This document shows positions 28,590-52,944 of a stretch of DNA of 64,000 nucleotides, one piece after another (position 1 is the first letter of the stretch; each line of letters opens with the position of its first letter). The translations under genes and the position numbers were made by a program. This stretch comes from Mantamonas sphyraenae STR306 (Eukaryota > Protista > CRuMs), in NCBI GenBank assembly GCA_026936335.1, contig JAPMXV010000075.1, positions 146,360 through 210,359 of the forward strand. The letters run 5' to 3'. Below the pieces are notes generated by a model, which was given only the letters and a program-made list of their open reading frames with translations, was not told where the DNA came from and made no database searches.

Positions 28590-29150
28590 GGGTGTGTGTG
28601 TTGTCGACGCGGAATGTGAAGGCGGCGAAGAAGAGGCTGAGCGCTCCTTGTCCTCTATGCGCGAGTGCAACAACGCATATTGCATACAGACAGTTTTGAA
28701 CAGTCATCAGGTAGGGAGGGGCGGGGGTATCGGGGACTTGTGCCCGTGTATAGATGGGATAGAGAGAGAGTCACGGAGGAATCAGGAGAGGCTGACAATC
28801 ATGGGATATCGCAGGAAATATGGGCTTAAACGTACATCAGTGGTTGGAATTGTTGCAGAGCGGGGACCATGGGCGGATTGTGGAAGCTTTGGAGGATCAG
28901 GGAACGGTGAGTAGGCGGAAAGAAATCGGGAGGGCGTTTTGGGTGAGCGTGACGTTGATCGTCGCACCAGAAGAAGGGAAGGAGGGATGGGAGTAGGGTG
29001 GATGTGATGGTGAGTACGCAGGGTGGAACGTGTGTTGACACGGCACACACAGAAATTGGACCTTGCACGTGGGGACCTGGGAGACAAAGAAGCAGCGGCA
29101 CTCGCGCGGGCACTGGCTCAGAACAGCAGCTTGCAGACCCTGGACCTCAA
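28590..29150. repeat. Upstream/exon-1/intron block, near-identical at ~34070-34630; a longer version (from ~28350) recurs diverged at ~50845-51780
   Basis: Shared text such as GAGGCTGAGCGCTCCTTGTCCTCTATGCGCG..CAACGCATATTGCATACAGACAGTTTTGAACAGTCATCAGGTAGGG. Confidence 0.85.
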
Positions 29151-30870
29151 CAACAACACCATCGGGGCAGAAGGCGCCGCAGCACTGGGGCAGGCACTAA
29201 GTGAGAACAGCGGCTTGCAGACACTGATTCTCTGGGACAACGGCCTCGGGGACGAAGGAGCAGCAGCGCTTGGGCAGGGACTGATTGATAACACCGCCTT
29301 GCAGACGCTGGACCTTGAGAACAACAGCATCGGGGACAAAGGCGCAAGAGCAATGGGGCAGGCACTGAGTAGGAACAGCTGCTTGCAGACACTGAACCTG
29401 GGAATCAACTGCATCGGGCCAGAAGGCGCAGCAGCACTGACGCAGGCACTGTGTGAGAACACCACCTTGCAGACGCTGGACCTCGGAAACAACAGCATTG
29501 GGGCAGAAGGCGCAGCAGCGCTGACGCCGGCACTGAGTGAGAACACCGGCTTGCAGACTCTGTACCTTAGTAGCAACAGCATCGGCGACAAAGGAGCAGC
29601 CGCACTGGCGCAGGGACTGAGGGAGAACCAGAACTTGCAGGCACTGAGCCTCTTCTACAACAGCGTCGGAGCAGAAGGAGCGGCAGCACTGGGGCAGGCT
29701 CTGAGTATGAACAGCAGCTTGCAGACACTGAACCTCGGCTGGAACAGTTTCGGGGCGGAAGGCGCAGCAGCACTGGCGCAGGCACTGAGGGAGAACCAGA
29801 GCTTGCACACACTCATCCTCAGCTCGTGCGGCACTGGTGCAGAGGGAGCAGCAGCACTGGGGCAGGCGCTGAGGGAGAACAACAGTTTGCAGACTCTGAA
29901 TTTTGGAAACAACAGTATCGGTGACGAAGGGGCCGCAGCACTGGGACAGGCTCTGAGTAGGAACAGCAGCTTGCGGACACTGTACCTCAGCCTTAACAGC
30001 ATCGAGGACGAAGGAGCAGCAGCACTGGGACAGGCACTGAGTGAGAACAGCTGCTTGCAGAAAATAGACCTCGCAAACAACAGCATCGAGGCAGAAGGCG
30101 CAGTAGCACTGGCGCAGGGTCTGAGCAAGAACAGCAGCTTGCAGACACTGAACCTCAGTACCAACACCATCAGGGCAGAAGGAGCAAAAGCGCTGGCGCA
30201 GGCACTGGGTGAGAACAGCACCTTGCAGATGCTGAGTCTCAGCTTCAATCCTACCGGGGACGAAGGAGCAGTAGCACTGGCTCAGGCATTGAGTGAGAGC
30301 AACAGCTTGCAGACACTTGACCTCGGGAACACCAGCATCAGGACAGAAGGTGCAGCAGCGCTTGCTCAGGCGATGGAGGGCAATCGCTCCTGCTGGAAGA
30401 TTGAAGGCGTTCGCAATGACGCGTTGCAGTCGCTGTTGGAGAGGAACATGGAGAATCACGTGGAGTTTGTGGAGTGTGGGGATGTGGAGACGATGAGAGA
30501 GTTGTGGGAATGGGGTGTGCCTGTGGACACGTTTGCAGGGGATGAGGGGGAGGAGACTGCGCTGGAGAGGGCTGTGAAGGGTGGGGATGAGACGATTGTG
30601 GATGTGTTGCGGGCGTGGGGTGCGACGCCGAGGATGGAAACGGTGGAGATTGTGAGGAAGGGAGGGTGGAGGAAGGCGTGGCATTGGATTGGATGGGGTG
30701 GGCAGGTGGATGAGGCGATGGAGGTGGCGCTGGTGATGAATGGGGAGGAGAGGGAGGCGATGTTTGAATGTGGAGGGATGGAGGCGTATGAACCGACTGC
30801 ACAGTGGATGACACTGCCGGATGAGGTGATGGAGAGGGTGATTGGGTGGATGGGGAGGGGTGGGTGGTGA
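28820..30870 (+). CDS. LRR-ankyrin-C-terminal F-box-like protein, copy 1 (16 LRRs); exons 28820-28906 and 29053-30870
   Basis: Exon 1 MGLNVHQWLELLQSGDHGRIVEALEDQGT, GTGAGT..TTGAC..CAG phase-0 intron, 28-aa repeats NSSLQTLxLxxNxIGAEGAAALAQALSE, ankyrin ETALERAVKGGDETIVDVLRAWGA, terminal WMTLPDEVMERVIGWMG. Confidence 0.88.
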
Positions 30871-32957
30871 TGGCGTCGCGGAATGAAGAAGTTGGTTGAG
30901 TGTGTGGTTGTGAGGGAAATGGGCAAGCAATGAAAACCAGCATGAGGAGTAAAAGGCGGTGCTACACACCCGTGTTTGTTGTTCACCACCTGTACAGACA
31001 GGACCATCGGGGTCCCAGTAATTACGCTCCAAGCACAACCGGCGAGTCCTCTTGCTTGGTAGTGTCGTCACTGCACATGCGGAGAAGGTTCCTCATTTGG
31101 ACACCCCACACACCATGCGCGTTCACTCGTGTTCCATAGCGGGATTGTCCTCTTCTGAGTCTGCCCTCCACCGTCCTCCGTCCCCGTTGTTGGGTGAGGG
31201 AGGGTCGTTGGGATGGGATGGGGGGTTCACCCACCCTCCACCATACCCCTTCCACGTACCCAGTCCCATCTTCTTCGTTGTCATTGTCGTTGTGGTTGTG
31301 GTTGTGATTGCAACTTGGCGCGTTGCACGTCGACGTGGCCACCTGCTTCCTGATGCTGCTACGGTTGTCCCCCTTTCATCCTCCAACCAGCGCCTCCATG
31401 CTGCGTCCGCTTCTGGCTTGCCAAAGCCCATGTCCGATGGACACTGGAAGGGATCCCACAGAACATGTCCCGGGGGGGAGGGGGGGTTCCTGGAGACGCG
31501 CCCACACACTCGCACCCTCCTCACGTCCACCACGCAAACACCCTGTGTTTCTCTTCATGGGTGGATGCACACGTTCTGCGGTTTGTCCATCCCTTTGTTC
31601 TCCCTCTGTGGCGACTTCTCTCTCCTTGGATCGGGGCGAGCAGCGCCGTTTTCACGCGCGTACTTTCCACGTGTCACATACACGCCTGTGCGTGCGTGGC
31701 TTCCCTTTGGCTTCGGACTGGGTTGACCTAGCCTTGTCCCAACTGGTCAAGAGGTTGTTCTCGCGTGCGTGCGAGTTGTGGCTGCAGCCACAGAGGCGAC
31801 TTGAGGGTGCGTCTGAACCGCGAGAACAAGCTGGAGCGCACGGGCCGCCAAAAGCGTGACGTGTGCCACGGAGGACATCCGAGATACGGCTGGGGATGAT
31901 GCCATGGGCCCCTCAGACGTGGAATTGGTGCATCTGTCCGGTTCCAAGGTGTGCTAAGGCGCCCATGGTGTTGAACGTGGCCTCGGTTGCCGGGCGTGTC
32001 GACGGGCGCCTTGGTCGCCGTCTGCCAGAATCCCATCACAGAGGCAGGGAGGACATTCGAACCGACTTTGACGACAGTACGCCACCGCACGTGTGTTTGT
32101 GCATGTGTTGGTGCAACGTCATTCTCACTACTGTTCCACGATGTTGGAGGGGGGCGGGAACTCCGGTGGCTGAAAACGCGCACCTCGGCGGGTGGGTGTG
32201 TGCATGTGTCCCCAGGACCACAACTTCAGTGAGGGTACACACACATACACGGGTCTCCCAATGGACGAAGCTGGTGATGTGTGTTCCCATCTGCGACCAT
32301 TTCAAGTGCGATGTGAAACGCCTCGCTTTTCGGACCCACCAGTGGATGATTGAGAACGTGTGGGTGGCAGAGGCGCCACCAGTGCGGTCGCGACGGATGA
32401 ACGGGTCATGCCAGGCGAAGCTTTGGTCTCTGTTGAGTCTCACGTGCAGCTCCGGGATTTTCCTGACTCGAAGAGGTGGAGAAAAAAGAACGCCGTTCAC
32501 ATTTTGGGAACGGATGATGGACCCCGAACATTATGAGTCAACCCGAAGGTAGCAGCCAAAAGCGCAACTCAACGGAGGAGGAGGACCAACGTGTCAGAGA
32601 AGAATTTTCCTGCCGAGTCTATCACGTGTGTCATGGGTGACATGGTGGACATGGATGCACAGGAGAGAATTCAAGATTCCCGGAGGAGTGGGAGTTGGGA
32701 GTGTGCAGCGTACGGGGAGAGGATACCGGGCGGGAGAAACGGAGCGTGGCGGTGAAGGCGCCGAACGACGCAACGCATCTTGGAATTGGTGACATCGAAC
32801 AGGAATCTCAGGGTAAGTGAGGTGGCTGGGTGGAGAACACACGGCTGGTGGGCTGTTGAGGGGAGGAATGGAAGGGGGCGGTCGCTGTGGGAGGGAGAGT
32901 GGGCGGGTGGTGCCCACGACGCTCACAACGGAGAGCAGACACAGATTGGGTACACAG

Positions 32958-34017
32958 ATGAATACCGATTGGAATGATCTGCTGAAGAACGGGGACCATG
33001 CACAGATTTGTAGTGCACTGGAGGCAGCGGGAGAGGTAGGCTGGGACCGGAACACAAGGAAGAGCGGGAAAGAAGTGGGTGAAGGGCAACAGTGGAGTGT
33101 GTGCTGACACGACACGTGGGCCACAGCGGCTGCGCATTAATTGCATGTATCTAGGGGACGACGAGGCAGTAGCGCTTGCCAAGGCGCTGGGGAAGAACAC
33201 CAGATTGCGGACACTCGACCTGGGCTTCAACAACATTGAGGACGAAGGAGCAACAGCGCTGGGACAGGCACTGAGTGAGAACAGCAGCTTGCAGAGACTG
33301 GACCTCAGGGCAAACAGCATCGGGGCAGCAGGAGCAGGAGCAGTGGCGCACGGACTGAGTGCGAACCGCAGCTTGCAGACGCTGTACCTCTTCAGGAATT
33401 CGATCGGGGCAGCAGGAGCAGCAGCACTGGGGCAGGGTCTGAGTGAGAACAGCAGCTTGCAGACACTGCACCTCGGCTGGAACAACATCGGGGACAAAGG
33501 TGCAGCAGCACTTGCTCAGGCGATAAAGGGCAATCGGTCGTGCTGGAAGATCACCGGCGTTCGCAATGACGCGTTACAGTCGCTGTTGGAGAGGAACATG
33601 GAGAATCACGTGGAGTTTGTGGGGTGTGGGGATGTGGAGACGATGAGAGAGTTGTGGGAGTGGGGTGTGCCTGTGGACACATTTGCGGGAGAGGGGGGGA
33701 CGGAGACTGCGCTGGAGAGAGGGGTGAAGGGAGGGGACGAGGGGTTGGTTGAGGTGTTGCGGGGATGGGGTGCGAAGCCGATGATGGAAACGGTGGAGTT
33801 GGTGAGGAAGGAGGGGTGGAGGAAGGCGTGGCATTGGATTGGGTGGGGTGGACAGGTGGATGAGGCGATGGAGGTGGGGTTGGTGATGAACGGGGAGGAG
33901 AGGGAGGTGATGTTTGAGTGTGGAGGGATGGAGGCGTATGAACCGACTGCACAGTGGATGACACTGCCAGACGAGGTGATGGAGAGGGTGATTGGGTGGG
34001 TGGGGAGGGGATGGTGA
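32958..34017 (+). CDS. LRR-ankyrin-F-box-like protein, copy 2 (5 LRRs); exons 32958-33035 and 33127-34017
   Basis: Exon 1 MNTDWNDLLKNGDHAQICSALEAAGE, GTAGGC..CTGAC..CAG intron, same C-terminal module as copy 1. Confidence 0.85.
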
Positions 34018-34305
34018 GTGGGGAGGGGAGGTGCGGAGAGGCGAATGTAGGTGGACAGTTTTTGAACAGTGATATGTGTGTGTGTGTGAGGTGGACGCGG
34101 GATGTGAAGGCGGCGACGAAGAGGCTGAGCGCTCCTTGTCCTCTATGCGCGGGTACAACAACGCATATTGCATACAGACAGTTTTGAACAGTCATCAGGT
34201 AGGGAGGGGCGGGGGCATCGGGGACTTGTGCCCGTGTATAGATGGGATAGAGAGATAGTAACGAGAGGAATCAGGAGAGGCTGACAATCATGGGATACAG
34301 GAAAT

Positions 34306-36430
34306 ATGGGCTTAAACGTACATCAGTGGTTGGAATTGTTGCAGAGCGGGGACCATGGGCGGATTGTAGAAGCTTTGGAGGATCAGGGAACGGTGAGTTG
34401 GCGGAAAGAAATCGGGAGGGAGTTTTGGGTGAGCGTGACGTTGATCGTCGCACAGGGAAGGAGGGATGGGTGTAGGGTGGATGTGATGGTGTATACGCAA
34501 GATGGAACGTGTGTTGACACGGCACACACAGAAATTGGACCTTGCACGTGGGGACCTGGGAGGCAAAGAAGCGGTGGCACTTGCGCGGGCACTAGCTCAG
34601 AACAGCAGCTTGCAGACCCTGGACCTCGCAGACAACCCCATCGGGGTAAAAGGCGCAACAGCACTTGGGAAGGCACTGAGGGAGAACAGCGGCTTGCAGA
34701 CACTGGACCTCAGCCACAACAGCATCGGGGCAAAAGGCGCAGCAGCATTGGGGCAAGCACTGTGTGAGAACATCAGCCTGCAGACGCTGGTCCTCAAAAA
34801 CAACAGCATCGGGAAAGAAGGAGCAGCAGCACTGGGGCAAGGACTGAGTGAGAACAGTACCTTGCAGACACTGAACCTCGGAAAAAACAGCCTCGGGGCA
34901 GAAGGCGCAGCAGCACTGGCAAAGGTACTGGGTGAGAGCAGTAGCTTGGAGACACTGAATCTCGACAGCAACAGGATCGGGGCAGAAGGAGCAGCAGCCC
35001 TGGGGCAGGCACTGAGGGAGAACCAGAGCTTGCAGACACTGGGTCTCACCAAGAACAGCATCGGGGCAGAAGGCGCAGCCGCGCTGGGGCAGGCACTGAG
35101 GGAGAACCAGAGCTTGCAGACACTGGGTCTCACCAAGAACAGCATCGGGGCAGAAGGCGCAGCCGCGCTGGGGCAGGCATTGAGTGAGAACAGCAGCTTG
35201 CAGAAACTGGGTATCAGCGACAACAGCATCGGGGCAGAAGGTGCAGGCGCGCTGGGGCAGGCACTGAGTGAGAACAGCAGCGTGCAGAATCTGGATATCA
35301 GCCGCAACGGCATCGGTGGAGAAGGAGCAAAAGCTCTGGCGCGGGCACTGAGTGAGAAAAACAGCTTGCAGTTTCTGGAGCTCTCTAGCAACAGGATCGG
35401 GGCAGACGGAGCAGCAGCACTGGCGCAGGCACTGGCTGAGAGCCGCAGCTTGCAGATACTGGACCTCGGCTGGAACAGCATCGGGACAGAAGGTGCAACC
35501 GCACTTGGGCAGGCACTGAGTGAGAACAACAGCTTGCATACACTGATCCTCAGCCGCAACAGCATCGGGGCAGAAGGAGCCGCAGCACTGGCGCAGGCAC
35601 TGAGTGAGAACAGCAGCTTGCAGACACTGAACCTCAGTACCAACACCATCAAGGCAGAAGGAGCAGCAGCACTGGGGCAGGCACTTTGTGAGAACCAGAG
35701 CTTGCAGAGACTGAACCTCGGAAACAACAGCATCTTGGCAGAAGGAGCCGCAGCACTGGCCCAGGGACTGGGGAAGAGCAGCAGCTTGCAGACCCTGAAC
35801 CTTAGTACCAACAGCATCAAGGCAGAAGGAGCAGCAGCACTGGGGCAGGCACTTTGTGAGAACCAGAGCTTGCAGACACTTTACATCAACTTCAACAGCA
35901 TCGCGGACAAAGGAACAGCAGCACTGGCCTTGGCGATGGAAGTCAATCGGTCGTGCTGGAGGATCGATGTCGTTGGCAATGGAGCTTTGCGGTCGCTGCT
36001 GGAAAGGAACATGGAGAATCACGTGGAGTTTGTGGAGTGTGGGGATGTGGAGAAGATGAGAGAGTTGAGGGAGTGGGGTGTGCCTGTGGACACATTTGCG
36101 GGAGAGGGGGGGACGGAGACTGCGCTGGAGAGAGCTGTGAAGGGTGGGGATGAGGAGATTGTGGAAGTGTTGCGGGCATGGGGAGCGAAGCCGAGGATGA
36201 AAACGGTGGAGATGGTGAGGAAGGAAGGGTGGAGGAAGGCGTGGCATTGGATTGGATGGGGTGGGCAGGTGGATGAGGCGATGGAGGTGGCGTTGGTGAT
36301 GAATGGGGAGGAGAGGGAGGCGATGTTTGAATGTGGTGGGATGGAGGCGTATGAACCGACTGCACAGTGGATGACACTGCCGGATGAGGTGATGGAGAGG
36401 GTGATTGGGTGGGTGGGGAAAGATGTGTGA
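34306..36430 (+). CDS. LRR-ankyrin-F-box-like protein, copy 3 (17 LRRs); exons 34306-34392 and 34532-36430
   Basis: Exon 1 peptide is identical to copy 1, the LRR string is different, and the ankyrin and TLPDEVMERVIGW end are the same. Confidence 0.88.
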
Positions 36431-36434
36431 ATTG

Positions 36435-37505
36435 TTCCGTTCATTCAAGGCGGTGGTGTTTGGAGGAGGAGGGCAAGGGATTGGAGAGGCGTTGAAGAGT
36501 GGAATGAATGGAAGGTGATGTGGGGTGATGCGGCCAATGAGGGTGTGCAGTGTCGTTGGGTTGGAGTTTGGGCAGTCAAGGGATCGTGTGGGAGAAGGGA
36601 GTGACGGCATGGGTGACAATGGCGCTGATGGTGGGTTGCACCTGCCTGGAGATGAGGTTGTGGCATGGTGATGGGAACGAGGGAGGCCAACACACAGCCG
36701 CTAACAGAGCCTCTGGTCGCTTTGACAGTCGTCTCTGGGTGTTCCTTCTCTGTGAAGTGGATACCATGGGACTGTCGCTGATGATGCATTGGCCTTTGGT
36801 GACACCGTGGCTGTATGGATGACACCAGCGAAGTAGAAACTCCGCCTGTGGGAGGATCAACGCACACAAAACCTGCCCTGTGTCGGCGCACAGCCCTCGT
36901 TGGATCCTAAGACCAAGCTTGTAGACGAGTCCACGGGAAACACACGCACAGACGCAGTTTCGTGTTTGGGGTGATTTTGGTGGAGAGCGGCTGGTTGTTG
37001 GCCATGTCGACAATGGTCGGAAAGTGGCGAAAAGTGGAATGAGGGTCATTGGGGTGTGGTTGATGTGTGGAGGGCAGAGACCGAGGCTGAGGGCATGGGA
37101 CGGCCTGTGGTGCGAGCAGGGGGGCGGCAAAGGTGCGGGTACTCGGCCACCGCCTGAAACCAGCTGCGTGAGTTTCTGCGACACTGCTCACGAATGCACA
37201 GCCTGACTGTGGTAAAAGTGTGCTTGGGAAGTGTGTGGGTGACTACACACAGGTGCAAGAGGTGGGCGTGGTGATCGAGGGGGTGTGTGGTCCGTGGGAG
37301 GGCGGTTTGTGGCGCAGGAAGGCGGCGAGGTGCGGCTGGGCTGGCAAGGCGACAAGCAAAAACGACGCCACGACCACCACCAGGCACATTTTTCATCGAA
37401 TTTGGGGAACTTGGCGCAGAGGTGGAATGGGAGGATGAGGCCTGTTGCGTGTGTGGGAGGAGGATGTGTCTGCGACAAAATCACCTCCGGGTGGCAAGGG
37501 GAGAG
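36435..37505. repeat. ~1.1-kb spacer duplicated at ~49460-50585
   Basis: Long near-identical stretches, e.g. GAAGTGGATACCATGGGACTGTCGC..GATGACACCAGCGAAGTAGAAACTCCGCC and CAGGCACATTTTTCATCGAATTTG. Confidence 0.88.
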
Positions 37506-38034
37506 GTCATGGGGCCGCAGTGCAGCAAGGTGGGCGATGACGCAGACTCAAGAGAAGGAAGCAGGTGGAGAGTCAGCAGTGTCATACGCAGCAGATGCCA
37601 GTGGGGTGGGAGAGCGTGCGCTTGTCAAAGCACAACAAACACAACTGACAAAAGGAGATGGACGAACAAGGTGAGTTGACGACGTAGTGGGGTCGATGTG
37701 TTGTTTGCCATTGGTTGGTGGGTGTGTGTTGGGACAGCGTGCAACCAGCTCTTCCGTTTTGGCGTGAGGAAGGAGGCCGGTTGGCGCGTGAGAACCTGGT
37801 GGCGAGGATCGTCGTGCTGCCCCCCAACGCACCATAGCAGGCAACGCTTGGGGTGCACAGAGTACTTGGCCAGTGCAGCAGCAACATGCGCCGCAGCTAA
37901 CAACCGGCACATGCTCACAGATTCAGACTCTGAAGGTATGGAGACCATGCAGAGGAGAAAGGGAGCTGGGCAGAGGGAAAGTTGGTGCACACACGCTCAC
38001 AACGGGCAAAGCAGGCGAAGTGAACATCCTGAAA

Positions 38035-39779
38035 ATGGATGATGATGACTGGGCGGCGTTGCTGCGGAGTGGGGATCATGAACGGATTTGTCGGGCACTG
38101 GAGGCAGAGGGAGAGGTGGGTTGTGACTGGGACGCGTGGCCGTGTTGCACGTCAAGAAGCGGATAAAGGGAAACTATGGAGTGTGTGTACTGACACGTGG
38201 AACACAGTGTTTGTGTATTCGTAGCCAGTTTCTGGGTGACAATGAGGCAGCCGCACTGGCGCAGGCACTGTGTGGGAAGTGCAGCTTGCAGACACTGGAC
38301 CTCAGTGACAACAGTATTGGGGACGAAGGAGCAGCAGCACTGGCGCAGGCACTGAGTGAGAACACCAGCTTGCAGACACTGAAGCTTGGTTCCGGCAGCA
38401 TCGGGAACTTAGGAACAACGGCACTTGCGCAGGCACTGATTGAGAACAGCAGCTTGAAGACTCTGCAAATCAGCACCAACAGCATCGAGGACGAAGGAGC
38501 ATCCGCACTGGGTCAGGCATTGTGTGAGAACAACAGCTTGCAGACTCTGGATCTCAGCCACAGCAGCATCGGTGGCAAAGGAGCGGCAGCAGTGTTCCAG
38601 GCCCTGAGTTTGAACAGCAGCTTGCAGACGCTGATCATCAGCTGGGATGGCATCGAGGCAGAAGGAGACGCAGCACTGGGGCAGGCTCTGAGTGAGAACA
38701 GCAGCTTGCTGACATTGGACCTCATCGACGACAGCATTGGGGACGATGGAGCAGCAGCACTGGCTCAGGGACTGAGTGCGAACAGCAGCTTGCAAACTCT
38801 ATACGTCGGCCACAACTGCATCGGGGACGGAGGAGCAGCAGCACTGGCTCAGGGACTGAGTGAGAACACCAGCTTGCAGACACTGGACCTCATCAACAAC
38901 TGCATCGGGGACGATGGAGCAGCAGCACTTGCTCGAGCATTGAGTACGAGCAGCAGCTTGCAAACACTATACCTCTGGAAAAACAGCATCGGGGACGATG
39001 GAGCAGCAGCACTGGGGCAGGCACTGAGTGAGAACAGCAGCTTGCAGGCTCTGGACCTCAACAGCAACAGTATCGGGGCAGAAGGAGCAGTAGCACTGGG
39101 GCAGGCACTGAGTGAGAACAGTAGCTTGCAGACTGTGGAACTCAGCTACAACAAAATCGGGGTCGGAGGAGCAATAGCACTGGCGCAGGCACTCAGTGAG
39201 AACAGGAGCTTGCAGAAACTGCACCTCAGAGACAACAGCATTGGTGGAGAAGGAGCAGCGGCACTGGCGGAGGCGATGCGTGGCAATCGGTCGTGCTGGA
39301 GCATCGTTTATGACCACGATCGGGCTTATCAGTCGTTGTTGGAGAGAAATAGGAAACATCACGCAGAGTTTGTGGAGTGTGGGGATGCGGTGAGGATGGC
39401 TGAATTGAGGAAGTGGGGTGTGCCTGTGGACACCTTTGCAGGGGAGAGTGGGAAGGAAACTGCGCTGGAGCGAGCAGTGAAGCGAGGGGACGAGAGGATT
39501 GTGGAGGTGTTGCGAGCATGGGGTGCGACGCCGAGGACGAAAACGGTGGAGATGGTGAGGGAGGAAGGGTGGAGGAAGGCGTGGCATTGGATTGGGTGGA
39601 GAGGACAGGTGGATGAGGCGATGGAGGTGGCATTGGTGATGAATGCGGAGGAGAGGGAGGTGATGTTTGAGTGTGGAGGGATGGAGGAGTATGTGGAGGA
39701 AGGAGGGTGGGAAGGGTGGGTGACACTGCCAGATGAGGTGATGGAGAGGGTGATTGGGTGGGTCGTGGTGGCTGGGTGA
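38035..39779 (+). CDS. LRR-ankyrin-F-box-like protein, copy 4 (13 LRRs); exons 38035-38115 and 38208-39779
   Basis: Exon 1 MDDDDWAALLRSGDHERICRALEAEGE, GTGGGT..CTGAC..CAG intron, C-terminus MEEYVEEGGWEGWVTLPDEVMERVIGW. Confidence 0.86.
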
Positions 39780-39854
39780 GGTGGGGAATGAACACCACTG
39801 GTTTGTGTCTGCGCAAAGTCTTCCCAGCATCCTTGCGCACCCAAACCAACCACC

Positions 39855-41211
39855 ATGGACTGGAATCACCTGCTGGATTCCCCCTCCGACCCATTGTCTA
39901 TTGAAGAGGCACTGGCACACGCTGGGAAAGTACGCTGAATCGCATTCCCCCGTTGCTGCTGCGCAAGGACCTTGCCTTACTCGCCTCCACCCCACCCCCG
40001 CTCTCAAGTCGCTCTCACTGCGGCAATGGCAGCTCACAGACACCCAAATCGCCTCTTTGGCATCATTTGGCATTGCCGGAAACACCACCCTCCAAGTCCT
40101 GGACCTCACACGGAGTGGAGTAGGCCCTCACGGCGCAACCGCCCTTGCCAAGGCCCTCACCGCCAACACAACCGTCCACACGCTAAAGTTGAACAGCAAT
40201 GTCATCGAAAGCAAAGGGTGCATTGCAATCATCGAGTCGTTGAACCACAACAACTCTCTGCTCTCCCTCAGTCTCCTGAAAACCAACCTCGATGACGAGT
40301 CGTTCCGTCTGGATGCAAACAACACGCTGAACGAGCTGAACGTCGCCTTCAACACCGTTGGCGACGCCTTTGCCGCCTCGTTGGCCAGTTGACTTTCTGA
40401 AAACACTTCTCTGTGCATCTTGACCCTCACCCACAACCAAATCAGCTGCCAAGGCGCAGAGGCCCTCGCTGCAGCGCTCACACACAACGTCAGGCTGACA
40501 GACCTTTCACTTGCCCACAACCACATCGAACGCAAAGGCGCTGTTGCCTTGGCCACTGCTCTGTTGGCAAATAGCACCCTGCAGTCTCTGAATCTCTACC
40601 ACAACAGCATCGATGACGACGGAGCCATCGCCATCGCCACAGCCCTGCATTCAAACAGCACTCTGCAGATTCTTGATTTGGCCAAGAATCCCATCAACGA
40701 CTTGGGGCAAACGGAATTGACGACTGCTTTGACCAACAACACGACTTGCTTGCGCATCGACTGCTGCAAGAGGGTGTTCAACTTGACACAAGCGAGGAAG
40801 TTCACAACAGCTGCACAGCGTGGCGATATTGCCACCATGGGCGAGTTGAGAGAGTGGGGTGTCGCTGTGGACGCTCGGGCAGGCGAGCACGGGCAAACCG
40901 CCTTGCAGCTGGCCATGGAAGCCAGACAGGATGCTGTGGTTGCACAACTGAGGCGTTGGGGGGCACAGGCGACGTATTCATTCACAAAGTCGATCGGGGG
41001 TTCAAACTGGGAATGGCGGGAACCGTGGCATTGGGTGTTGGGCACCGTGGTGCAAGACACCGCATTGGAAGTCGTCCTGGCCATGAACGCTGAGGAGCGG
41101 GATGTGATGTTTGAAGCAGGAGGGATGGAAGGGTATGTTCCCACGGCCCTGTGGAGCACCCTTCCAGACGAGGTGATGGAACGTGTGGCAACGTGGATCG
41201 GCCATCTGTGA
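39855..41211 (+). pseudogene. Divergent LRR-ankyrin-F-box-like copy 5 (~9 LRRs) with one in-frame TGA at 40390-40392; intron 39930-40008
   Basis: Exon 1 MDWNHLLDSPSDPLSIEEALAHAGK. ORFs 39754-40392 and 40420-41211 are in the same frame (LAS*LSENTSL). Ends WSTLPDEVMERVATWIGHL. Confidence 0.75.
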
Positions 41212-43479: not shown

Positions 43480-45259
43480 TCACCCTCCCTTGGCCAGCCA
43501 CTCCAACACCCTCTCCATCAGCTCATCCGGCACCGTCCACCAATCACACGTCGCCTCATACCCTCCCATGCCACCACACGCAAACATCACCTCCCTCTCC
43601 TCCCCATTCATCACCAGCGCCGTCTCCATCGCCACATCCATCACACAACCCCATCCAATCCAATGCCACGCCTTCCGCCACCCTGCCTCCCTCACCATCT
43701 TTACCGTTTCCATCCTTGGTTTCGCACCCCACGCTCGCAACACCTCGACCACTGCCTCATCCTCGCGTTGCACAGCACTCACCAACGCAGTCTCCTCCTT
43801 GCCTCCTCCATCCCCTGCACACGTGTCCACAGACACGCCCCAAGCCAGCAGCTCCTCCATCGCCTTGACATCTCCTCGTCCAGCACTCATCACGAACGAA
43901 TGGGCCATGTCACGATTTCTTGCTGTGGTCGCACTCTGCCCGATGCCGTCGATTTCCCAGCAGCTCCTGTTCTCCTCCAGTGCCTCGGCCAGCGCCTTTG
44001 CTCCCTGTGCACCCATTCTATTGTTTCTCAGGAACAGTCTCTGCAGGCTGCGGTTCCTCTCCAAAGCTCTGGCCAGAGCCACGGCCCCGTCCGGGCCGAC
44101 GCCGTTCCTGACAAGTTTCAGCTTCTGCAAACTGCTGCTTCCCTCCAGCGCTTCCGCCAGCACTGTGGCCCCATGCTCTCCGACGCTGTTGTTGTTCAGG
44201 TCCAGTGTGTGCAAGCTGACGTTCTTCTGCAGTGCCCTGGCCAGAGCCGCGGCCCCTTCCGGCCCGATTCCGTTTCTCCCGAGTGTCAGCGTCTGCAAAC
44301 TGCTGCTTCCCTCCAGCGCTTCGGCCAGCACTGTGGCTCCTTCCGAGACGATGGCGTTGCGATCGAGGTTGAGCTCCTGCAGGCTGGTGTTTCCTTGCAG
44401 CCCCTTGGCCAGTGCTGCAGCCCCTTCTGCCCCGATCCAGTTGGCGCTGAGGTCCAGTGTCTGCAAACAGTGGTTTCCACCCAATGCGTTGGCCATGGCT
44501 GCTGCTCCGTCTGCGCCGACCACGTTGTCGCCGAGCGTGAGCATCTCCAAACTGCAGCTCTGTGCCACAGCGGCGGTGGCCAACGCGGTTGCTCCTCTTG
44601 GGCCGATGTTGTTGTGGTTGAGGTTCAGTGTGCGCAACCCGTGATTCTCTTCCAGTGCAACGGCCAGTGCGCACGCCCCACGGGTGCCGATGTCGCAGTT
44701 GGTGAGGTCCAGTGAGGTCAGGTGCACACACACAACCAAAGCCTGTGCAAGTGCAGCAGCTCCTTCTGCGCCAATGCTGTTCGCCCCAAGATGCAATCCC
44801 TGCAAAGAAGTATTCTGTGACAATCCTTGGGCAAGTGCAGCTGTCCCCTCGGCCCCTATGCAGTTGCCTTTCAGATTCAGTGTGCGCAAACACGTGTTTG
44901 TTGCCAGTGCGGCGGCCAATGCCACCGCTCCGTCATCGCATGTGCTTTGCAAAGACAAGTCCAGTGTTTGGATGGTTGTGTTCGCCTCCAGTGCTTTGGC
45001 CAGTGCGCCTGCTTCGTGGACACCGATTCTGTTGTGAAAAAGGGTCCAACACATCTGTGGCCGCGGCAGACTTTTCGACACGTCTTTGCGCAAGATCCAA
45101 TTCCTGGTTTTGACGACGCGTGTCAGCAGCACGGCACGGCCATTGCACGCTCTCGTTTCCTCGCCTTGCCTTTCCTGCAGCCTCCAACGCGGAACAAATC
45201 TGCTTCTCGTCGCCGTCGCGCAACAGGGTGGTCCAGTCGACTGCCCCCTGTGTGGTCAT
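43480..45259 (-). CDS. LRR-ankyrin-F-box-like protein, copy 6 (~13 LRRs, inverted); exon 1 45259-45170, probable GC-AG intron 45169-45104; apparent +1 frameshift near 45043 or an alternative acceptor
   Basis: Exon 1 MTTQGAVDWTTLLRDGDEKQICSALEAAGK is homologous to the other first exons. ORF 43480-45132 carries LRRs, ankyrin and WWTVPDELMERVLEWL. Confidence 0.78.
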
Positions 45260-45825
45260 TGTGTCTGGACGGTATTTCATGTGAGCTGATCTCACACGCT
45301 GCTGCCCATCTGCTCTCCGCTTCAACTCCATTCCACGCACCGGCTGAACGCGAAAAATCGGCAGCACGTTCAGGTTGGTCACGTGTGGGGCAATGTCTTT
45401 CCGATCCATCCGAAGACCCTGTTTATCACCTCATCCGGTAGTGTGTATTGAGTGGATACACCTCTTGCACGAGGAGGAGTGAACAGTGGCTGGTGGTGGG
45501 TGATCGACAGGTGGAATGGACGTGCTTTTGAGGGGATAAGGGGCGAGATTAGAGTTCAGGGGAGGTGGAGAGGGGAGGGGTGACTTTGTTGGAATTGGAG
45601 GGAGCGGGAAGGGAGGGGGGAAGGGAGTGGGCGGGGTGCAAGCGCAGCAGGAGGCAACGCATCTTGGAGCTGTCACATTCTCGCAGGGTCGCAATGTAGG
45701 TGGAGTGGGGTGGACAGAGGACGTGTGGGATGGAGTGGTGGTGGAGAGGGAGGAGGAGGGCGGCGGCGGAAGGGAGGGGAGGGAAAGGTGGTGCTCACGC
45801 GCTCACAACGGGCAACGCAGACGAT

Positions 45826-47446
45826 ATGAACTGGTCGAGGAACGAGTGGCGCAATTTGCTGAATGGCGGGGATCATGAACGGATTTGTAGCGCACTGGAG
45901 GCAGTGGGAGAGGTGGGTTGCGACTGGACGCAGAGGGATGTTTGGCACGTCAGGAAAAATGAAGCGCAAAAATGGAGTGTGTGCTGACACGTGGAGCACA
46001 GATGATGAGTATTGAATTCGCGAACCTCGGAGGTTATTGGACAGTAGCACTGGCCAAGGCGCTGGGGACGAACACAAGTTTGCAGACACTGAATCTCTGC
46101 AACAACAGCATCGGGGCAGAAGGGGCAGCCGCACTGGCGCAGGCACTTTGTTTAAACAGCAGCCTGCAGACACTGAATCTCTACAACAACGGGATCGGGG
46201 CAGAAGGGGCAGCAGCACTGGCGCAGGCACTGGGTGGGAACAGCAGCTTGCAGAGACTGAATCTCAGCGCCAACGGGATCGGGGCAGAAGGGGCAGCAGC
46301 ACTGGCCAAGGCGCTGGGGACGAACACAAGTTTGCGGATACTGAACCTCAGCGTCAACGGGATCGGGGCAGATGGAGCAACGGCACTGGCGCAAGCACTG
46401 AGTGAGAACAGCAGCTTGCGAACACTGAACTCTTTGGCAACAACGACATCGGGCAACGAAGGCGCAGCTGCAACTCGCGCAGGCACTGAGGGAGAACAGC
46501 AGCTTTGCGGACACTACTCTCTCGGCGCAAACAGCATCGGGGGCAGAAGGAGCAGCCGCACTTGGCGCAGGGGATTGAGGGAGGACAGCAGCGTTCAGAT
46601 TCTGCAACTCGACAGCAATCGCATCGGGGCAGAAGGAGCAGCTGCACTTGCGCAGGCGCTGAGTGTTAACCGCAGCTTGCAGAATCTGGACCTCACCGGT
46701 ACCGGCGTTGGCGAAGAAGGTGCAACAGCACTGGCGCAGGCGCTGAGGGAGAACAGCAGCTTGCAGATACTGTACCTCAGCGACAACAGAATCGGGGACG
46801 AAGGAGCAGCAGCATTGGCAAAGGCAATGCAAGGCAATCGATCGTGCTGGACATCGAATGGGCTTCGCAATGACACTTTGGAGTCGCTTTGGAGAGAAAC
46901 AAGGAGCAGCACGAGGAGTTTGTGGAGTGTGGAAATGTGGAGAGGATGGCTGCGTTGAAGGAGTGGGGTGTGCCTATGGACACGTTTGCAGGGGAGCACG
47001 GAAGGACCACGGCGCTGGAGCGAGCAGTTGAGGATGGGGATGATGAGATTGTGGAGGTGTTGCGGGGATGGGGTGCCAAGCCGAGGATGAGGGACGGAAG
47101 AGATGGTGCGGAAGGTAGGGTGGAGGAAGGCGTGGCATTGGATTGGATGGGGTGGATTGGTGGAGGAGGCGATGGAGGTGGCATTGGTGATGAATGGGGA
47201 GGAGAGGGAGGTGATGTTTGAGTGTGGTGGGATGGAGGAGTATGTGGAGGAGGGAGGGTGGGAAGGGTGGGTGACGCTTCCAGATGAGGTGATGGAGAGG
47301 GTGATTGGGTGGGTGGGGAGGGGTGCTGCACCGGCAAGGGTCGCTGTGGGGAGGTCAGGGGAGACGAGGAAGCGAGGGAGAGATGAGGTGGAAGAGGAGA
47401 GGAGGAAGCAGAGGTGGAGAAGAGGCAACGTGTGGAGGAGGAGTGA
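45826..47446 (+). pseudogene. LRR-ankyrin-F-box-like copy 7 (~10 LRRs) with several frameshifts (real or sequencing) and a basic/acidic tail; intron 45913-46001
   Basis: Exon 1 MNWSRNEWRNLLNGGDHERICSALEAVGE. The module is split over ORFs starting at 45972, 46889 and 47103. Confidence 0.78.
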
Positions 47447-47852
47447 ACAGTGGGGTGTGATCAGCAAGGAGGAATGGACGTCGGACGCAGGAGAGGAGGA
47501 AAGGGCAGGAGGTTGGCAGGAAGGTAGGGAGGATCTTGGACGACGGGGATGGCAATGTGGGGAGAATGTACATTCAACACACAGATAGCAATGCCAGTGC
47601 AATGGAAGGGGGTGGTTGCACTGGCAGTCCATTGCGAGGGAAGGAAGGTTTGGAGGCCTTTTGCAGCGGTACGGTGTTGGCAAGCGCAGCAGCGCACAAC
47701 GCATTTAGGAGCTGTCACATTCTTACGGGACCGCAGTGTAGGTAGATTTGGGTGAATAGAGAAGTGTGGGATGGAGAGAGGGAGGAGGAGGACGGCCGTG
47801 GAAGCGAAGGAGAGGAAACGGTGGTGCACACACGCTCACAACGGGCAAGCAG

Positions 47853-49439
47853 ATGAGCTCGACAAACATGGATGATTGGGTGGCTTTGCTGCAGAGCGGG
47901 GATCATGCACGGATTGGCAGTGCTCTGGAGGCAGAGGAAGAGGTGTGTTGCGCCCGGAACGCGGACGGAATGGTTGTGTCACGTCCAGAAGCGAGTGGGC
48001 GAAGGGAAAGAATGTGTGCTGACACGTGGAGCACGGAAGTTGATCATTGTTCACAAGCAGTTGGGAGACAATGAGGCAGTAGCACTGGCCAAGGCGCTGG
48101 GAAAGAATAGGAGCTTGAGGAAATTGTCGTTGAACAAGAACAGTATCGGGGACGGGCAGCAGCACTGGCGCAGGGCTTAGTGAATACAGCAGCTTGCAGA
48201 AACTGGAACTAAGCGGCAACAGAATCGGGGACGAAGGGCAGCAGCACTGGCGCAGGCACTGTGTATGAACCGCAGCCTTCAGACACTGTACCTCAACGAC
48301 AACAGCATCGAGGCAGAAGGCGCATCAGCACTTGCGCAAGCACTGATTGCCAGCAACAGCTTGCAGAAACTCTTTCTCGGGCAACAACAACATCGGGGCA
48401 GAAGGGGCAGCAGCGTTGGCACAGGCAATTTGCGAGAACTCCAGCTTGCACTCACTGAACCTCTGGGGCAACAGCGTCGGTGCAGAAGGAGCAGCAGCGC
48501 TGGCGCAGGCAATTTTGCGAGAACTCCAGCTTGCACTCACTGAAGCTCTGGGGCAACAGCGTTGGTGCAGAAGGAGAGCAGCAGCGCTGGCAAAGGCACT
48601 GTGTGTGAACAGCAGCTTGCAGACACTCTTTGTCTACACCAACAACATCGGAACAGAAGGAGCAAAAGCGCTGGCCCAAGGCACTGTGTGAGAACCGTAG
48701 CCTGCGTACACTGGGTCTCAGCCTCAACAATATCGGAACAGACGGTGCAACAGCACTGGCGCAGGCACTGAGTGTGAACAGCAGCTTGCAGAAGCTGGAA
48801 GTTAACGACAACAGCCTCGGGGATGAAGGAGCAGCAGCACTGGCGCAGGCGCTGGCTGAGAACAACAGCTTGCAGTCGCTGGACCTCAGCAGGATCAGCA
48901 TCATGGATGAGGGAGAAGCAGCACTGACAAGGGCAATGGAAGGCAATCGGTCCTGCTGGAGGATCTACGGCGTTTTCGATACCTCTTTGTGGTCACTGTT
49001 GGAGAGGAACAGGAAGCATCACGTGGAGTTTGTGGAGTGTGGGGATGTGGAGAGGATGAGAGAGTTGATGGAGTGGGGGGTGCCTGTCGACACGTTTGCA
49101 GGGGAGAGGGGGAGGAAGAATGCGCTGGAGAGAGCAGTGACGCGAGGGGATGAGAGGATTGTGGAGGTGTTGCGGGAGTGGGGTGCAAAGCCAAGGATGG
49201 AAACGGTGGAGATGGTGAGGAAGGAAGGGTGGAGGAAGGCGTGGCATTGGATTTGGTGGGGTGGACAGGTGGATGGGGCAATGGAAGTGGCGTTGGTGAT
49301 GAATGGAGAGGAGAGGGAAGTGATGTTTGAGTGTGGAGGGATGGAGGAGTATCTGGAGGAGGGAGGGTGGGAAGGGTGGGTGACGCTTCCAGATGAGGTA
49401 ATGGAGAGGGTGATTGGGTGGGTGGGGAGGGGAGAGTGA
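47853..49439 (+). pseudogene. LRR-ankyrin-F-box-like copy 8 (~11 LRRs), frameshifted in the LRR region; acceptor changed from CACAG to CACGG with an in-frame AAG 3 nt downstream
   Basis: Exon 1 (MSSTN)MDDWVALLQSGDHARIGSALEAEEE. LRR fragments lie in several frames, and the C-terminal module is intact in ORF 48630-49439. Confidence 0.78.
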
Positions 49440-51457
49440 GGTGGGGAGGGTGTGGGAATGGATGCGTTCATTCAAGGCGGTGGTTTTTGGAGGAGGAGGG
49501 CAAGGGATTGGAGAGGCGTTGAAGAGTGGAATGAATGGAAGGTGATGCGGAGTGTGATACGGTCAAAGAGGGTGCAGTGTTGTTGGGTTGGGGTTGGGCA
49601 GTCAAGGGGTCGAGTGGGAGAAGGGAGTGACGGCATGGGTGACAATGGCGGGGATGGTGGGTTGCACCTGCCTGGAGATGAGGTGTGGCATGGTGGTGCG
49701 AACGAGGGAGACCAAACACACAGTGGCTCATAGGGCCTCTGGTCGCTTTGTCAGTCATCTCTGGATGTTCCTTCTCTGTGAAGTGGATACCATGGGACTG
49801 TCGCGGATGATGCATTGGCCTTTGGTGACACCGTGGCTGTATGGATGACACCAGCGAAGTAGAAACTCCGCCTGTGTGAGGATCAACGCACACAAACCCT
49901 GTCCTGTGTCAGCGCACAGCCCTCACTGGATCCTAAGACCATGCGTGTAGTCGAGTGCATGGGAAACACACGCGCAGAGGCAGTTTCGTATTTTGGGTGA
50001 TTTTGGTGGAGAGCGGCTGGTTGTTCACCATGTCGACAATGGTCGAAAAGTGGCGAAAAGTGGAATGAGGGTCAGTGGGGTGTGGTTGATGTGTGGAGGG
50101 CGGAGACCGAGGCTGAGGGCATGGGGTGGCCTGTGGTGCGAGCAGGGCGGCGGCAAAGGTGCGGGTGCTCGGCCACCGCCTGACACCAGCTGCGTGAGTT
50201 TCTGCGACACTGCTCACGAATGCACAGCCTGACTGTGGTAGAAGTGTGCTTGGGAAGTGTGTGGGTGACTGCACACAGGTGCAAGAGGTGGGCGTGGTGA
50301 TCAAGGGGGTGTGTGGTCTGTGGGAGGGCGGTTTGTGGCGCAGGAAGGCGGCGAGGTGCGGCTGGGCTGGCAAGGCGACAAGCAAAATCGACGCCACGAC
50401 CACCACCAGGCACATTTTTCATCGAATTTGAGGAACTTGGTGGAGAGGTGGAATGGGAGGATGCGGGCCCAGAGAACGGAGGATGAGGGCGTGGAGGGGC
50501 CTGTGGCGTGTGTGGGAGGCGGAGTTGATGGAGGCCGGATTGCCACCTTGCGACAAAATCACCCCAGGGTGGCAAGGGAGGAGGGTATGGGATGGATGGT
50601 GGTGAAGAGGGGTGGGGGAAGGAGGGACGGTTGGGGTAGCATGTGTGTGTGCATGGACGCAGCCATCCGCACACGCGGGCCGAAGAGCAGGAAGATGGGC
50701 GGCGACTCAGATTCGGGAAGAGGAAGCAAGGTGAAGAGTCATTCGTGTCGCAAGAATGAATTTGGCGGACGCCATTGGCATTGCATGGGCGCATGGGTGA
50801 ACACAGCAGTGGCAAGCAGGAGGAGGACGAGGCCAACGGTTGTTTCTTCCATGCTGGTGGCACTGATGGACAAAGACAGAACGTTGTGTGAAGCACTCTG
50901 GGGAGTGATAGCACGGCATGGATGCACTGGGCAGAGTGAACGAGGGCATGCATGGGGCGTGGAGGCAGACAACCGCCAAAGGAAGATGGGCAAGTCGTGG
51001 CAGGTGCTGCTGGGAAGGACGAGGGAGGAATGTGTGGAGGATAGTAGAGTGAAGAGGGAAGGTGTGGTTCATTCATGTGTGGTGGTGGTGGTGGATGGAG
51101 GAAGAGGGTCAGGAGTGGACTGGAGGCATGGTGGGGCGCACAAAGGGTGTGGAACGCCGTTCTACTGTGGACGTTGTGGCGTAGTTGGGTAAAATGTAGG
51201 TGGGCAGTTTGTGAACAGTGATTGGGTGTGTGTGTTGTGAACGCGGGATGTGAAGGGGCGAAGAAGGAACAGAGTGCTGCTTTTCCTCTGTGCGGAGGTG
51301 CATCCAACGCATATTGCACACACACACTTTAGAGCAGTCATTGGGTAGGGAAGGGCGGGGGAATCGGGGACTTGTGCGCTTGTGAGGGTGGGATAGGGAG
51401 AGAGGCACGAGAAGGAGGAATCAAGAGGGGCTGACCTCGTGGAGTACCGCAGGAATT

Positions 51458-52944
51458 ATGGGCTTGGAAAGAGAAGAATGGGTGGAATCGTTGCAGAGTG
51501 GGGACCATGGGCGGATTGTGGAAGCTTTGGAGGCTCAGGAAGGGTGAGAGTTGACGGAAAGAAATCGGGAGGGAGTTGGTGAGCGTGACGTGCGTCGCAC
51601 GGGGAAGGGGAGGAGGGATGGGGGTAGGGTGGGTGTGATGGTGAGTAGGAAGGGTGGGACGTGTGTTGACACCTCGAACACAGAAATTGGACCTTTGCAA
51701 TTGGTACTTGAGTGACCACGAAGCAGCGGCACTTTCGCAGGCACTTGCTCAGAACAGCAGCTTGCAGACACTGATCCTCAGCCACAACAGATTCGGGGCA
51801 GAAGGCGCAGCAGCTCTGGGGCGGGCACTGGGTGAGAACAGCAGCTTGCAGACACTGTCCCTCGGCTCCAACAGCATAGGGTATGAAGGAGCAGCTGCGC
51901 TGGTGCAGGCACTTTGTGTGAACAGCGGCTTGCAGGCACTGGACCTCGGCGACAACAGCATCGGGGCAGATGGAGCAGCAGCACTGGCGCAGGCACTGAA
52001 GAAGAACAGCAGCTTGCAGACACTGTTCCTCGGCGACAACAGCATTGGATATGAAGGAGCAGCTGCACTTGCGCAGGCGCTGTGTGTGAACAGTAGCTTG
52101 CAGACACTGGACCTCGGAGGCAACAAAATCTGCGACGAAGGAGCAGCAGCACTTGCTCAGGCGCTGGCTGAGAACTGCAGCTTGCAGATACTGTACCTCG
52201 GACGCAACAAAATCTGCGACGAAGGAGCAGCAGCACTTGCTCAGGCGCTGGCTGAGAACTGCAGCCTGCAGGCACTGTTCCTTGGTAGCAGCATTGGGGA
52301 CAAAGGAAAAGCATCACTGGTGCAGGCAATGCAAGGCAATCGGTCGTGCTGCATTATCCACGGCGTTGAAAATGATGCGTTGCTGTCACTGTTGGAGAGG
52401 AACAAGGAGCAGCACGAGGAGTTTGTGGAGTGTGGGGATGTGGAGAAGATGGCTGAATTGAAGGAGTGGGGTGTGCCTGTGGACACGATTGCAGGTAGTC
52501 AAGGTGGTACACTGCGCTGGAGGTAGCAGTTGAGGATGGGGATGATGAGATTGTGGAGGTGTTGCGGGAGTGGGGTGCAAAGCCGAGGATGAAAACGGTG
52601 GAGATGGTGAGGAAGGAAGGGTGGAGGAAGGCGTGGCATTGGATTGGGTGGGGTGGACAGGTGGATGAAGCGATGGAGGTGGCATTGGTGATGAACGGGG
52701 AGGAGAGGGAGGTGATGTTTGAGTGTGGAGGGATGGATGAGTATGTGGAGGAGGCAGGGTGGAAGGGTGGGTGACACTGCCGGATGAGGTAATGGAGAGG
52801 GTGATTGGGTGGGTGGGGAGGGGAGCTGCTCCGGCAAGGGTCGCTGTGGGGAAGTCAGGGGAGACCAGGAAGCGAGGGAGGGATGAGGTGGAGGAGGAGG
52901 AGGAACCGGAGGTGGAGAAGAGGCAACGTGTGGAGGAGGAGTGA
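51458..52944 (+). pseudogene. LRR-ankyrin-F-box-like copy 9 (8 LRRs) with single-base frameshifts and a basic/acidic tail
   Basis: Exon 1 MGLEREEWVESLQSGDHGRIVEALEAQ; exon 2 starts at 51684. The module is split over ORFs starting at 51654, 52553 and 52759. Ends ETRKRGRDEVEEEEEPEVEKRQRVEEE. Confidence 0.78.

Follow-up and report, generated by a model that had tools for sequence, protein, structure and literature searches.

In animal innate immune receptors, recognition is carried out by horseshoes of NLR-type leucine-rich repeats (LRRs); little is known of how protists use them. Subtelomeric, rapidly evolving families of repeat proteins are already known. Here, we describe an array of nine paralogous genes in a stretch of 64,000 nucleotides from the protist Mantamonas sphyraenae STR306 (GenBank assembly GCA_026936335.1, contig JAPMXV010000075.1, positions 146,360 to 210,359 of the forward strand); we call this whole stretch the window and count positions from its first letter. 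The genes join an LRR array with a variable face to a C-terminal module made of ankyrin (ANK) repeats and a tryptophan-rich tail, and this module is under purifying selection.

Comparison with described systems

LRR domains of the ribonuclease inhibitor (RI)/NLRC3 type, as found in NACHT-LRR proteins, are built from the same alternating repeat of 28 amino acids as the family described here. Unlike NACHT-LRR proteins, the family has no NACHT, CARD/PYD or GAP, and its LRRs are followed by ankyrins and an orphan tail. Variable LRR families are also found elsewhere: Tetrahymena LRR genes are reportedly subtelomeric and rapidly evolving, and lamprey VLRs have constant ends with variable LRR cassettes in the middle. 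The array resembles both in these respects. In contrast to these systems, its variation is germline and lies between paralogues, with no evidence of somatic assembly, and its proteins look cytosolic rather than surface-exposed.

The C-terminal end of the family invites comparison with adaptors of ubiquitin ligases. F-box–LRR proteins of the FBXL/Skp2 type and the bacterial GALA effectors likewise combine an L-P-x-E helix with LRRs related to LRR_6. Their F-box is N-terminal, with about 40–50 residues and three helices, and their LRRs are of the 26-amino-acid CC type, whereas the motif of the present family, some 15 residues in length, stands at the C-terminus, with ankyrins between it and the LRRs. 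In the ANK–PRANC proteins of poxviruses and Orientia, including cowpox CP77, ankyrins and a linker likewise lead to an L-P-x-E helix at the very C-terminus, and the genes likewise occur in many copies, many of them truncated, at the ends of genomes or chromosomes (PMC4353913). The present family differs in that it gives no PRANC or F-box profile match, could hold at most helix 1 of an F-box and consists of cellular genes with an intron; in addition, its recognition part would be the LRR array and not the ankyrins. Finally, the ANK/BC-box and ASB adaptors of Cullin-2/5 likewise have ankyrins followed by a short C-terminal helix starting with T-L (PMC6232478). In our family, position 6 of the BC box is Val or Leu and not Cys, Ser or Ala, and there is no Cul box and no SOCS_box match in Pfam.

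Nine paralogues at a chromosome end

Based on motif scans, lists of open reading frames (ORFs) and alignments, we recovered nine paralogues, eight on the + strand and one on the − strand, at 11–35 kb from a telomere. The window, which has a G+C content of 58%, closes with a perfect telomere repeat. The G-rich strand of this repeat runs outward at the window's end, and the window is therefore the right end of a chromosome, with the telomere 11 kb past the last copy. The nine copies (g1 to g9), an orphan fragment and the telomere are located as follows.

28820..30870, + strand: g1, intact, about 16 LRRs, then cap, ANK and tail; exon 1 28820–28906 (29 codons), intron 28907–29052, exon 2 29053–30870 (605 codons)
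32958..34017, + strand: g2, intact, the shortest copy, about 5 LRRs; exon 1 32958–33035, intron 33036–33126, exon 2 33127–34017 (296 codons)
34306..36430, + strand: g3, intact, about 17 LRRs including recent internal duplications; exon 1 34306–34392, intron 34393–34531 (alternative acceptor 34501/34502), exon 2 34532–36430 (632 codons)
38035..39779, + strand: g4, intact, about 13 LRRs; exon 1 38035–38115, intron 38116–38207, exon 2 38208–39779 (523 codons)
39754..41211, + strand: g5, the most divergent copy, about 9 LRRs; in-frame stop at 40390–40392, no recognisable exon 1
43480..45259, − strand: g6, intact, inverted, about 13 LRRs; exon 1 45259–45170, then GCAAGG as a GC donor; exon 2 45054–43480 (524 codons), likely acceptor CACAG
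45397..45444, − strand: orphan terminal motif alone, 16 residues, T-L-P-D-E-V-I-N-R-V-F-G-W-I-G-K
45826..47330, + strand: g7, disrupted; exon 1 45826–45912; usual stop after the motif lost
47853..49439, + strand: g8, disrupted; exon 1 47853–47942; LRR array (48115–48700) with at least 5 frame changes
51458..52944, + strand: g9, disrupted, about 7 LRRs; exon 1 51458–51543; usual stop after the motif lost
63865–64000, + strand: telomere repeat, perfect (AGGGTT)22.7, equivalent to (TTAGGG)n

An earlier interpretation of this DNA, made from the letters alone and called here the sequence-only reading, had placed nine paralogues at these positions and strands and described them as subtelomeric. It had given them one layout (a short exon 1, 5–17 RI/NLRC3-type LRRs of 28 amino acids, an NRSCW-type cap, about two ankyrin repeats, a helical W-x4-H-W segment and a terminal W-x-T-L-P-D-E-V-M-E-R-V-I-G-W), with a variable part and a constant end, in intracellular proteins lacking a signal peptide, NACHT or kinase domain, and had regarded the architecture as undescribed. 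Our analysis bears out this picture, apart from the nature of the helical segment, to which we return below together with the proposed F-box.

Five of the copies (g1, g2, g3, g4 and g6) are intact, each with two exons, 322–661 codons and conserved splice signals, and the remaining four (g5, g7, g8 and g9) are disrupted. The short exon 1, recovered for all copies except g5, has 26–30 codons and encodes W-x2-LL-x2-GDH-x2-I-x2-ALE. Its DNA is only 43–56% identical between two 5' types, and the peptide is nonetheless kept. The donors after exon 1 are GT(G/A)(A/G)G(T/C)-like, with g6 requiring a GC donor, and a conserved CACAG acceptor lies just before the first LRR, giving introns of 89–146 nt. 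Use of this acceptor leads to phase-0 in-frame models for g1, g2, g3, g4, g7 and g8. Exons were searched and folded separately, and exons 1 and 2 were joined only for a scripted check of the reading phase at their junctions. Disrupted copies are described as they stand, with their frames left unmended.

We found no signal peptide, transmembrane segment, NACHT, kinase or other such domain, using Pfam on the ORFs and reading for exon 1. In particular, no ORF matched NACHT or NB-ARC N-terminal to the LRRs, which are preceded only by the 26–30 codons of exon 1. On reading, exon 1 is hydrophilic and therefore unlike a signal peptide. As far as their sequences tell, the proteins of this family look soluble and intracellular.

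A variable LRR array reshuffled by recombination

The copies contain 5–17 LRRs of ribonuclease-inhibitor/NLR type, repeated with a period of 84 nt that corresponds to units of 28 amino acids. All seven ORFs tested match Pfam LRR_6 (PF13516) at 50–249 bits against a cut-off of 23.4 (E 1e-13 to 3.5e-77), and matches in the Protein Data Bank (PDB) include ribonuclease inhibitor (E 5e-37), NLRP and RanGAP. Among the matches listed, the closest LRRs belong to NACHT proteins of ENA assemblies (49–57% identity), and those of vertebrate NLRC3 are 41–46% identical.

Among the matches listed, the LRRs closest to those of g3, at 54% identity, are part of a 1062-amino-acid NACHT–LRR protein on a 729-kb contig (ENA ERZ25067889, contig ctg49634_28x_l, 3001-6189). 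The organism behind it may be the nearest sampled relative, or the protein may merely share a common, consensus-like LRR.

To describe variability, we used the 68 LRR units that are in frame. Entropy reaches 3.0–3.6 bits at positions 5, 7 and 8 of the L-Q-T-L-x-L-x-x-N stretch, while most of the scaffold (positions 1, 4, 15, 16, 18, 19 and 23) has less than 0.5 bits, with moderate variability at positions 10, 13, 24, 25 and 27. In established LRR structures, ligands are contacted by the concave β-sheet face, and positions 5, 7 and 8 lie along it. The ratio of nonsynonymous to synonymous substitution rates (dN/dS) is about 1.0 at the variable positions and 0.31 at the scaffold, as computed over all unit pairs, which are saturated (dS about 1). 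Because of this saturation, we do not claim positive selection on the LRR units.

The repeats differ between copies in order as well as in content. For example, the 5' regions of g1 and g3 share 96% identity; the figure is 94% for their first LRR unit and 91% for their DNA from cap to stop. Their inner LRR units, by contrast, are at most 86% identical and show no collinear diagonal. Within g3, certain units are 94–96% identical to one another, indicating recent internal duplication. The two ends of the genes also group differently: by their 5' types, g1, g3 and g9 stand against g2, g4, g7 and g8; by their 3' types, g1, g2 and g3 stand against g4, g7, g8 and g9. The groupings are discordant for g2 and g9, and these two copies are therefore recombinant mosaics. 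Together, the non-collinear interiors and the mosaics indicate that unequal crossing-over and gene conversion within the arrays of repeats are the main source of variation. The result is a shuffled middle flanked by a conserved exon 1 peptide and a conserved C-terminal module.

A constant C-terminal module under purifying selection

The LRR array ends in an N-R-S-C-W/C cap in eight of the nine copies; in g5 the cap reads N-T-T-C-L. It is followed by two ankyrin repeats, supported by matches of DARPin and ankyrin chains of the PDB (E 1e-14 to 8e-16) that span residues 27–88 of the C-terminal domain. Pfam Ank models stay below threshold here (E 0.008–0.25). After the ankyrin repeats comes a Trp-rich tail of about 78 residues.

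All nine copies carry in this tail the segment W-R-K-A-W-H-W and the terminal motif W-x-T-L-P-D-E-V-M-E-R-V-I-G-W, with small variants in g5 and g6 (in g6 the motif is W-W-T-V-P-D-E-L-M-E-R-V-L-E-W). The motif has 15 residues. In the seven copies with a normal stop, another 3–6 residues come before the stop codon, and 13–16 residues lie between Leu-Pro and the stop. The segment that the sequence-only reading had taken to be helical follows, from W-R-K-A-W-H-W to A-M-E-V-A-L-V-M-N-G, the ankyrin pattern T-P-L-H...L-L-x-x-G with an invariant His, and HMMER aligned it weakly (3.4 bits) to a NOMPC ankyrin repeat. Accordingly, the segment is present as described and is probably a degenerate third ankyrin repeat.

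Several lines of evidence show that the module is kept. Pairwise dN/dS of the C-terminal domain is 0.16–0.52 at dS from 0.18 to more than 2. In the terminal motif, 10 of the 15 residues are invariant in the nine copies, and six of these (T, P, D, E, R and one V) have undergone synonymous codon changes. The low dN/dS and the synonymous-only change in the motif argue that the C-terminal module is functional; both the module and its terminal motif are under purifying selection. Even in the divergent copy g5, cap, ankyrins and tail are still an open frame, with dN/dS of 0.16–0.27 against the other copies.

We found no relative of the tail in the libraries searched. A word-index protein search with cap, ankyrins and tail of g3 gave no match at E<=0.001, and a HMMER profile of the tail run against 1.84 billion protein representatives found only three repetitive, unrelated proteins. 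Neither the metagenome contigs nor IMG/VR yielded a relative in back-translated scans. In the PDB, the profile search gave one chance match (E 1.3), and the other matches were ankyrin proteins only, over the two clear repeats only. A weak Pfam match to PRiA4_ORF3 (E ~0.02) was treated as chance.

The combination of parts sets the family apart. Among the 120 closest LRR proteins listed, none had an ankyrin domain or an alignment past the LRRs: the alignments cover at most 83% of the query, and most end with the LRR part (75% of the query). The exon 1 helix, LRR array, ankyrins and orphan Trp-rich tail thus did not occur together in any of these 120 proteins, while the LRRs themselves are of the ordinary RI/NLR type.

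We also considered two other gene models, both rejected. The terminal motif is not an N-terminal F-box of the next gene, in the classical F-box–LRR order: the frame of the preceding LRR–ANK exon runs on into it, a stop follows it, and the next gene has a different exon 1. A further 3' exon, suggested by a stop lying within GTGA(G), has no room: only 289 nt separate the stop of g2 from the start of g3, and these are the conserved promoter and 5' region.

Proposed role of the family

Tandem paralogues near a telomere, pseudogenes, recombinant mosaics and an orphan fragment, the marks of a birth-and-death multigene family, are all found at this locus. We propose that the array is such a family, subtelomeric and lineage-specific, encoding what would be soluble intracellular proteins in three parts. 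The first would be a short conserved N-terminal helix from exon 1. The second is an LRR horseshoe of RI/NLR type with 5–17 repeats, the inner ones reshuffled by unequal crossing-over and gene conversion among the tandem copies; its concave face would be a variable surface for ligand binding. The third comprises the LRR cap, two clear ankyrins and a probable degenerate third, and a Trp-rich tail that would end in an amphipathic helix. This constant part would couple every variant to a common partner or location, for which an adaptor subunit of a cullin ligase is one candidate of several. Overall, we consider it probable that the genes encode a variable LRR binder whose selected C-terminal module serves one common partner or location.

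Four considerations weigh on the other side. With four of the nine copies broken, the whole array could be decaying. The saturated dN/dS of about 1 in the LRRs fits relaxed constraint as well as diversifying selection. AlphaFold, run twice on a shallow alignment of seven paralogues, reached a mean predicted local distance difference test (pLDDT) score of 59.6 and 53.1, with the tail below 50; it predicted a hairpin and then the terminal helix, at values too low to establish the fold of the constant module. Finally, axonemal LRR proteins are among the best-scoring PDB matches of the LRRs, and a structural role other than recognition may thus fit as well.

The alternative that survives best gives the terminal helix a purely intramolecular task, as a truncated fourth ankyrin repeat or a C-terminal cap that seals the stack, and makes its likeness to an F-box coincidental. 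The run K-A-W-H-W-I-G-W-G-G...A-M-E-V-A-L-V-M-N-G with its invariant His fits the ankyrin consensus x-T-P-L-H-x-A-x-x-x-G...V-x-x-L-L-x-x-G, the HMMER alignment to NOMPC points the same way, and in the AlphaFold models the terminal helix comes right after a β-hairpin, as it would in an ankyrin repeat. In addition, Foldseek on the second, low-confidence model returned ankyrin proteins only, none better than E 0.09. Nonetheless, these alignments are weak and pLDDT is below 50 in this part, and ten invariant residues, D, E, E and R among them, are more than a cap helix usually requires. We regard the capping reading as unlikely; capping and the docking of a partner can both hold, and a helix that caps a degenerate ankyrin stack accounts for the motif as well as docking does.

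A second alternative, which takes up the sequence-only reading, makes the proteins substrate receptors of a cullin-RING ligase. The terminal T-L-P-D-E-V-M-E-R-V-I-G-W would be a minimal, helix-1-only F-box for docking to Skp1, or else a BC-box-like helix that binds Elongin C, and the variable LRRs would pick targets for ubiquitylation. Compared with the textbook consensus, L-P-D-E-V-M-E-R-V-I-G-W resembles F-box helix 1 in its Leu-Pro, its acidic residue and its i/i+1/i+4/i+5/i+8 hydrophobic spacing, and it stands at the extreme C-terminus after ankyrins, as in ANK/PRANC proteins. The strong purifying selection on the motif also counts in its favour. Precedents exist: poxviral F-boxes keep two of the three helices, CP77 is a helix-1-only exception that binds Skp1, and helix 1 with its preceding loop makes most of the contacts to Skp1 (review, PMC4353913). 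Likewise, a C-terminal BC box on ANK proteins suffices for Cullin-2 binding (PMC6232478).

Nevertheless, profile and structure searches speak against an F-box or PRANC C-terminus. Using whole proteins, tails and the last 26–30 residues as queries (18 sequences), we obtained no Pfam match at E<=10 to F-box (PF00646/PF12937), F-box-like, PRANC (PF09372) or SOCS-box. The only Pfam match to the last residues was RHH_5 (E 0.02–0.12), an unrelated family that also begins with 'LPDE + helix'. We treat this match as chance, and it indicates that the string is unspecific. Foldseek, one of the checks that the sequence-only reading had proposed for the C-terminus, returned ankyrin proteins only on the low-confidence model, and no F-box chain in the PDB matched the tail profile at E<=10. 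With 13–16 residues after Leu-Pro, compared with about 40 in a cellular F-box, there is space for helix 1 at most, and helices 2 and 3 are absent. The BC-box pattern [TSP]-L-x3-[CSA]-x3-[AILMFVPG] fails at position 6 in all copies (Val, or Leu in g6) and also at position 2 in g6 (Val), and no residues are left for a Cul box. The ligase reading, which depends on some 12 residues, is unlikely.

Its wider form is more doubtful still. Here, a germline, subtelomeric repertoire of NLR-type LRRs, with ankyrins and a helix-1-only C-terminal F-box or BC-box-like helix, would feed a cullin-RING ligase in a recognise-and-degrade system directed against viruses, endosymbionts or foreign proteins. An immune or effector role for the family is conjecture.

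That the array is a decaying subtelomeric remnant of a once-useful gene, without present function, is very improbable: the disrupted copies, the orphan tail fragment and the two copies without a normal stop would fit, but the five open two-exon frames with conserved splice signals, a C-terminal dN/dS well below 1 even at dS>2 and the synonymous-only change in the motif do not.

Returning to a variable binder with a constant coupling module, the locus would be of interest in several respects. NLR-type LRRs occur here without an NTPase domain and are wired to a conserved ankyrin/Trp-rich module without known relative. Shuffled repeats between constant ends, in a recombination-prone subtelomere, are the pattern that a repertoire of binders sharing one output would be expected to leave in a genome. 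Candidate partners of the constant module include a ligase, a scaffold or a membrane, and finding the true one would reveal a new route of signalling or degradation in a poorly sampled lineage. If the ligase reading were true, the poxvirus/Orientia ANK–PRANC layout would have in this family its first cellular counterpart, one in which the LRRs are what varies. If the family were unexpressed or structural, it would still be a clear example of repeat shuffling by subtelomeric recombination.

Disrupted copies and the orphan motif

Judged by their frames, the four disrupted copies are pseudogenised; assembly error may be the cause of the disruptions in g5, g7, g8 and g9. Given its in-frame stop and the lack of a recognisable exon 1, g5 is probably a pseudogene. 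The other three have from one to at least five frame changes each. In g7, these are found in the LRR array (~46416–46592) and, within cap, ankyrins and tail, near 46890 and 47090. In g8, an open frame persists at 48630–49439, covering the last three LRRs with cap, ankyrins and tail. The frame of g9 changes near 52511 and 52765, and the junction of its exon 1 is out of phase with the conserved acceptor.

Both g7 (47274-47460) and g9 (52774-52944), on the + strand, run without the usual stop into a common acidic/basic extension (…GRGAAPARVAVG.SGETRKRGRDEVEEE…). Since they share the loss of the stop as well as the extension, both copies appear to descend from one already altered ancestor.

The orphan motif lies 117 nt upstream of exon 1 of g6, with a pyrimidine tract and AG before it and a stop after it. 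It is probably the relic of a lost head-to-tail neighbour at an inversion breakpoint.

Composition and neighbouring genes

On the coding strand of the array (28000–54000), GC skew is 0.2–0.4, intergenic G-rich tracts included, compared with about 0.1 in the neighbouring genes. Long spurious ORFs are present on the antisense strand of every LRR array. Rfam and transfer RNA (tRNA) scans found no RNA genes in the window.

Upstream of the array, genes are long, almost intron-free ORFs of protist type. The features on both sides are as follows.

Upstream of the array: Patched/sterol-sensing fragment
Upstream of the array: two multi-pass receptors with LRR and TRP-like parts
3857-8380, + strand: giant membrane protein with LRR and TRP-like parts, 1507 codons
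9805-11922, + strand: PKD2-like cation channel
12745-25584, + strand: single ORF of 4279 codons with TIG, Ephrin_rec_like and DUF7630 domains
26277-28343, − strand: BTB/BACK-type ORF adjoining the array on the centromere side
56820-57872, + strand: ORF with a weak SPRY domain (E 1.6e-4, below the Pfam cut-off) on the telomere side
58586-63229, − strand: receptor-like gene, the last before the telomere, split over several ORFs (introns or frameshifts)

BTB/BACK and SPRY domains are frequent in ubiquitin-ligase adaptors. The best match of the PKD2-like channel among 5.8 billion clustered proteins, from transcriptome and Logan contigs, is 35% identical, which points to an essentially unsampled source lineage, and vertebrate homologues reach at most about 31%. 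The telomere repeat is also that of vertebrates, but the intron-poor genes of protist type and the low identity of vertebrate homologues speak against human DNA. A trypanosomatid origin, which the TTAGGG telomere, 58% G+C and long ORFs might suggest, is rejected on account of the conserved cis-spliced intron. The proteins encoded at 3857-8380 and 12745-25584 have a similar multi-pass C-terminus, and by sequence they look like a receptor family with one common membrane module.

In the last gene before the telomere, a Cys-rich region is combined with a hydrophobic N-terminus and a multi-pass end of TRP-like type (PF06011). A tandem array at 61715-62754, with a 69/139-nt repeat, is coding and corresponds to 23-amino-acid units of LRR_8 type within this gene.

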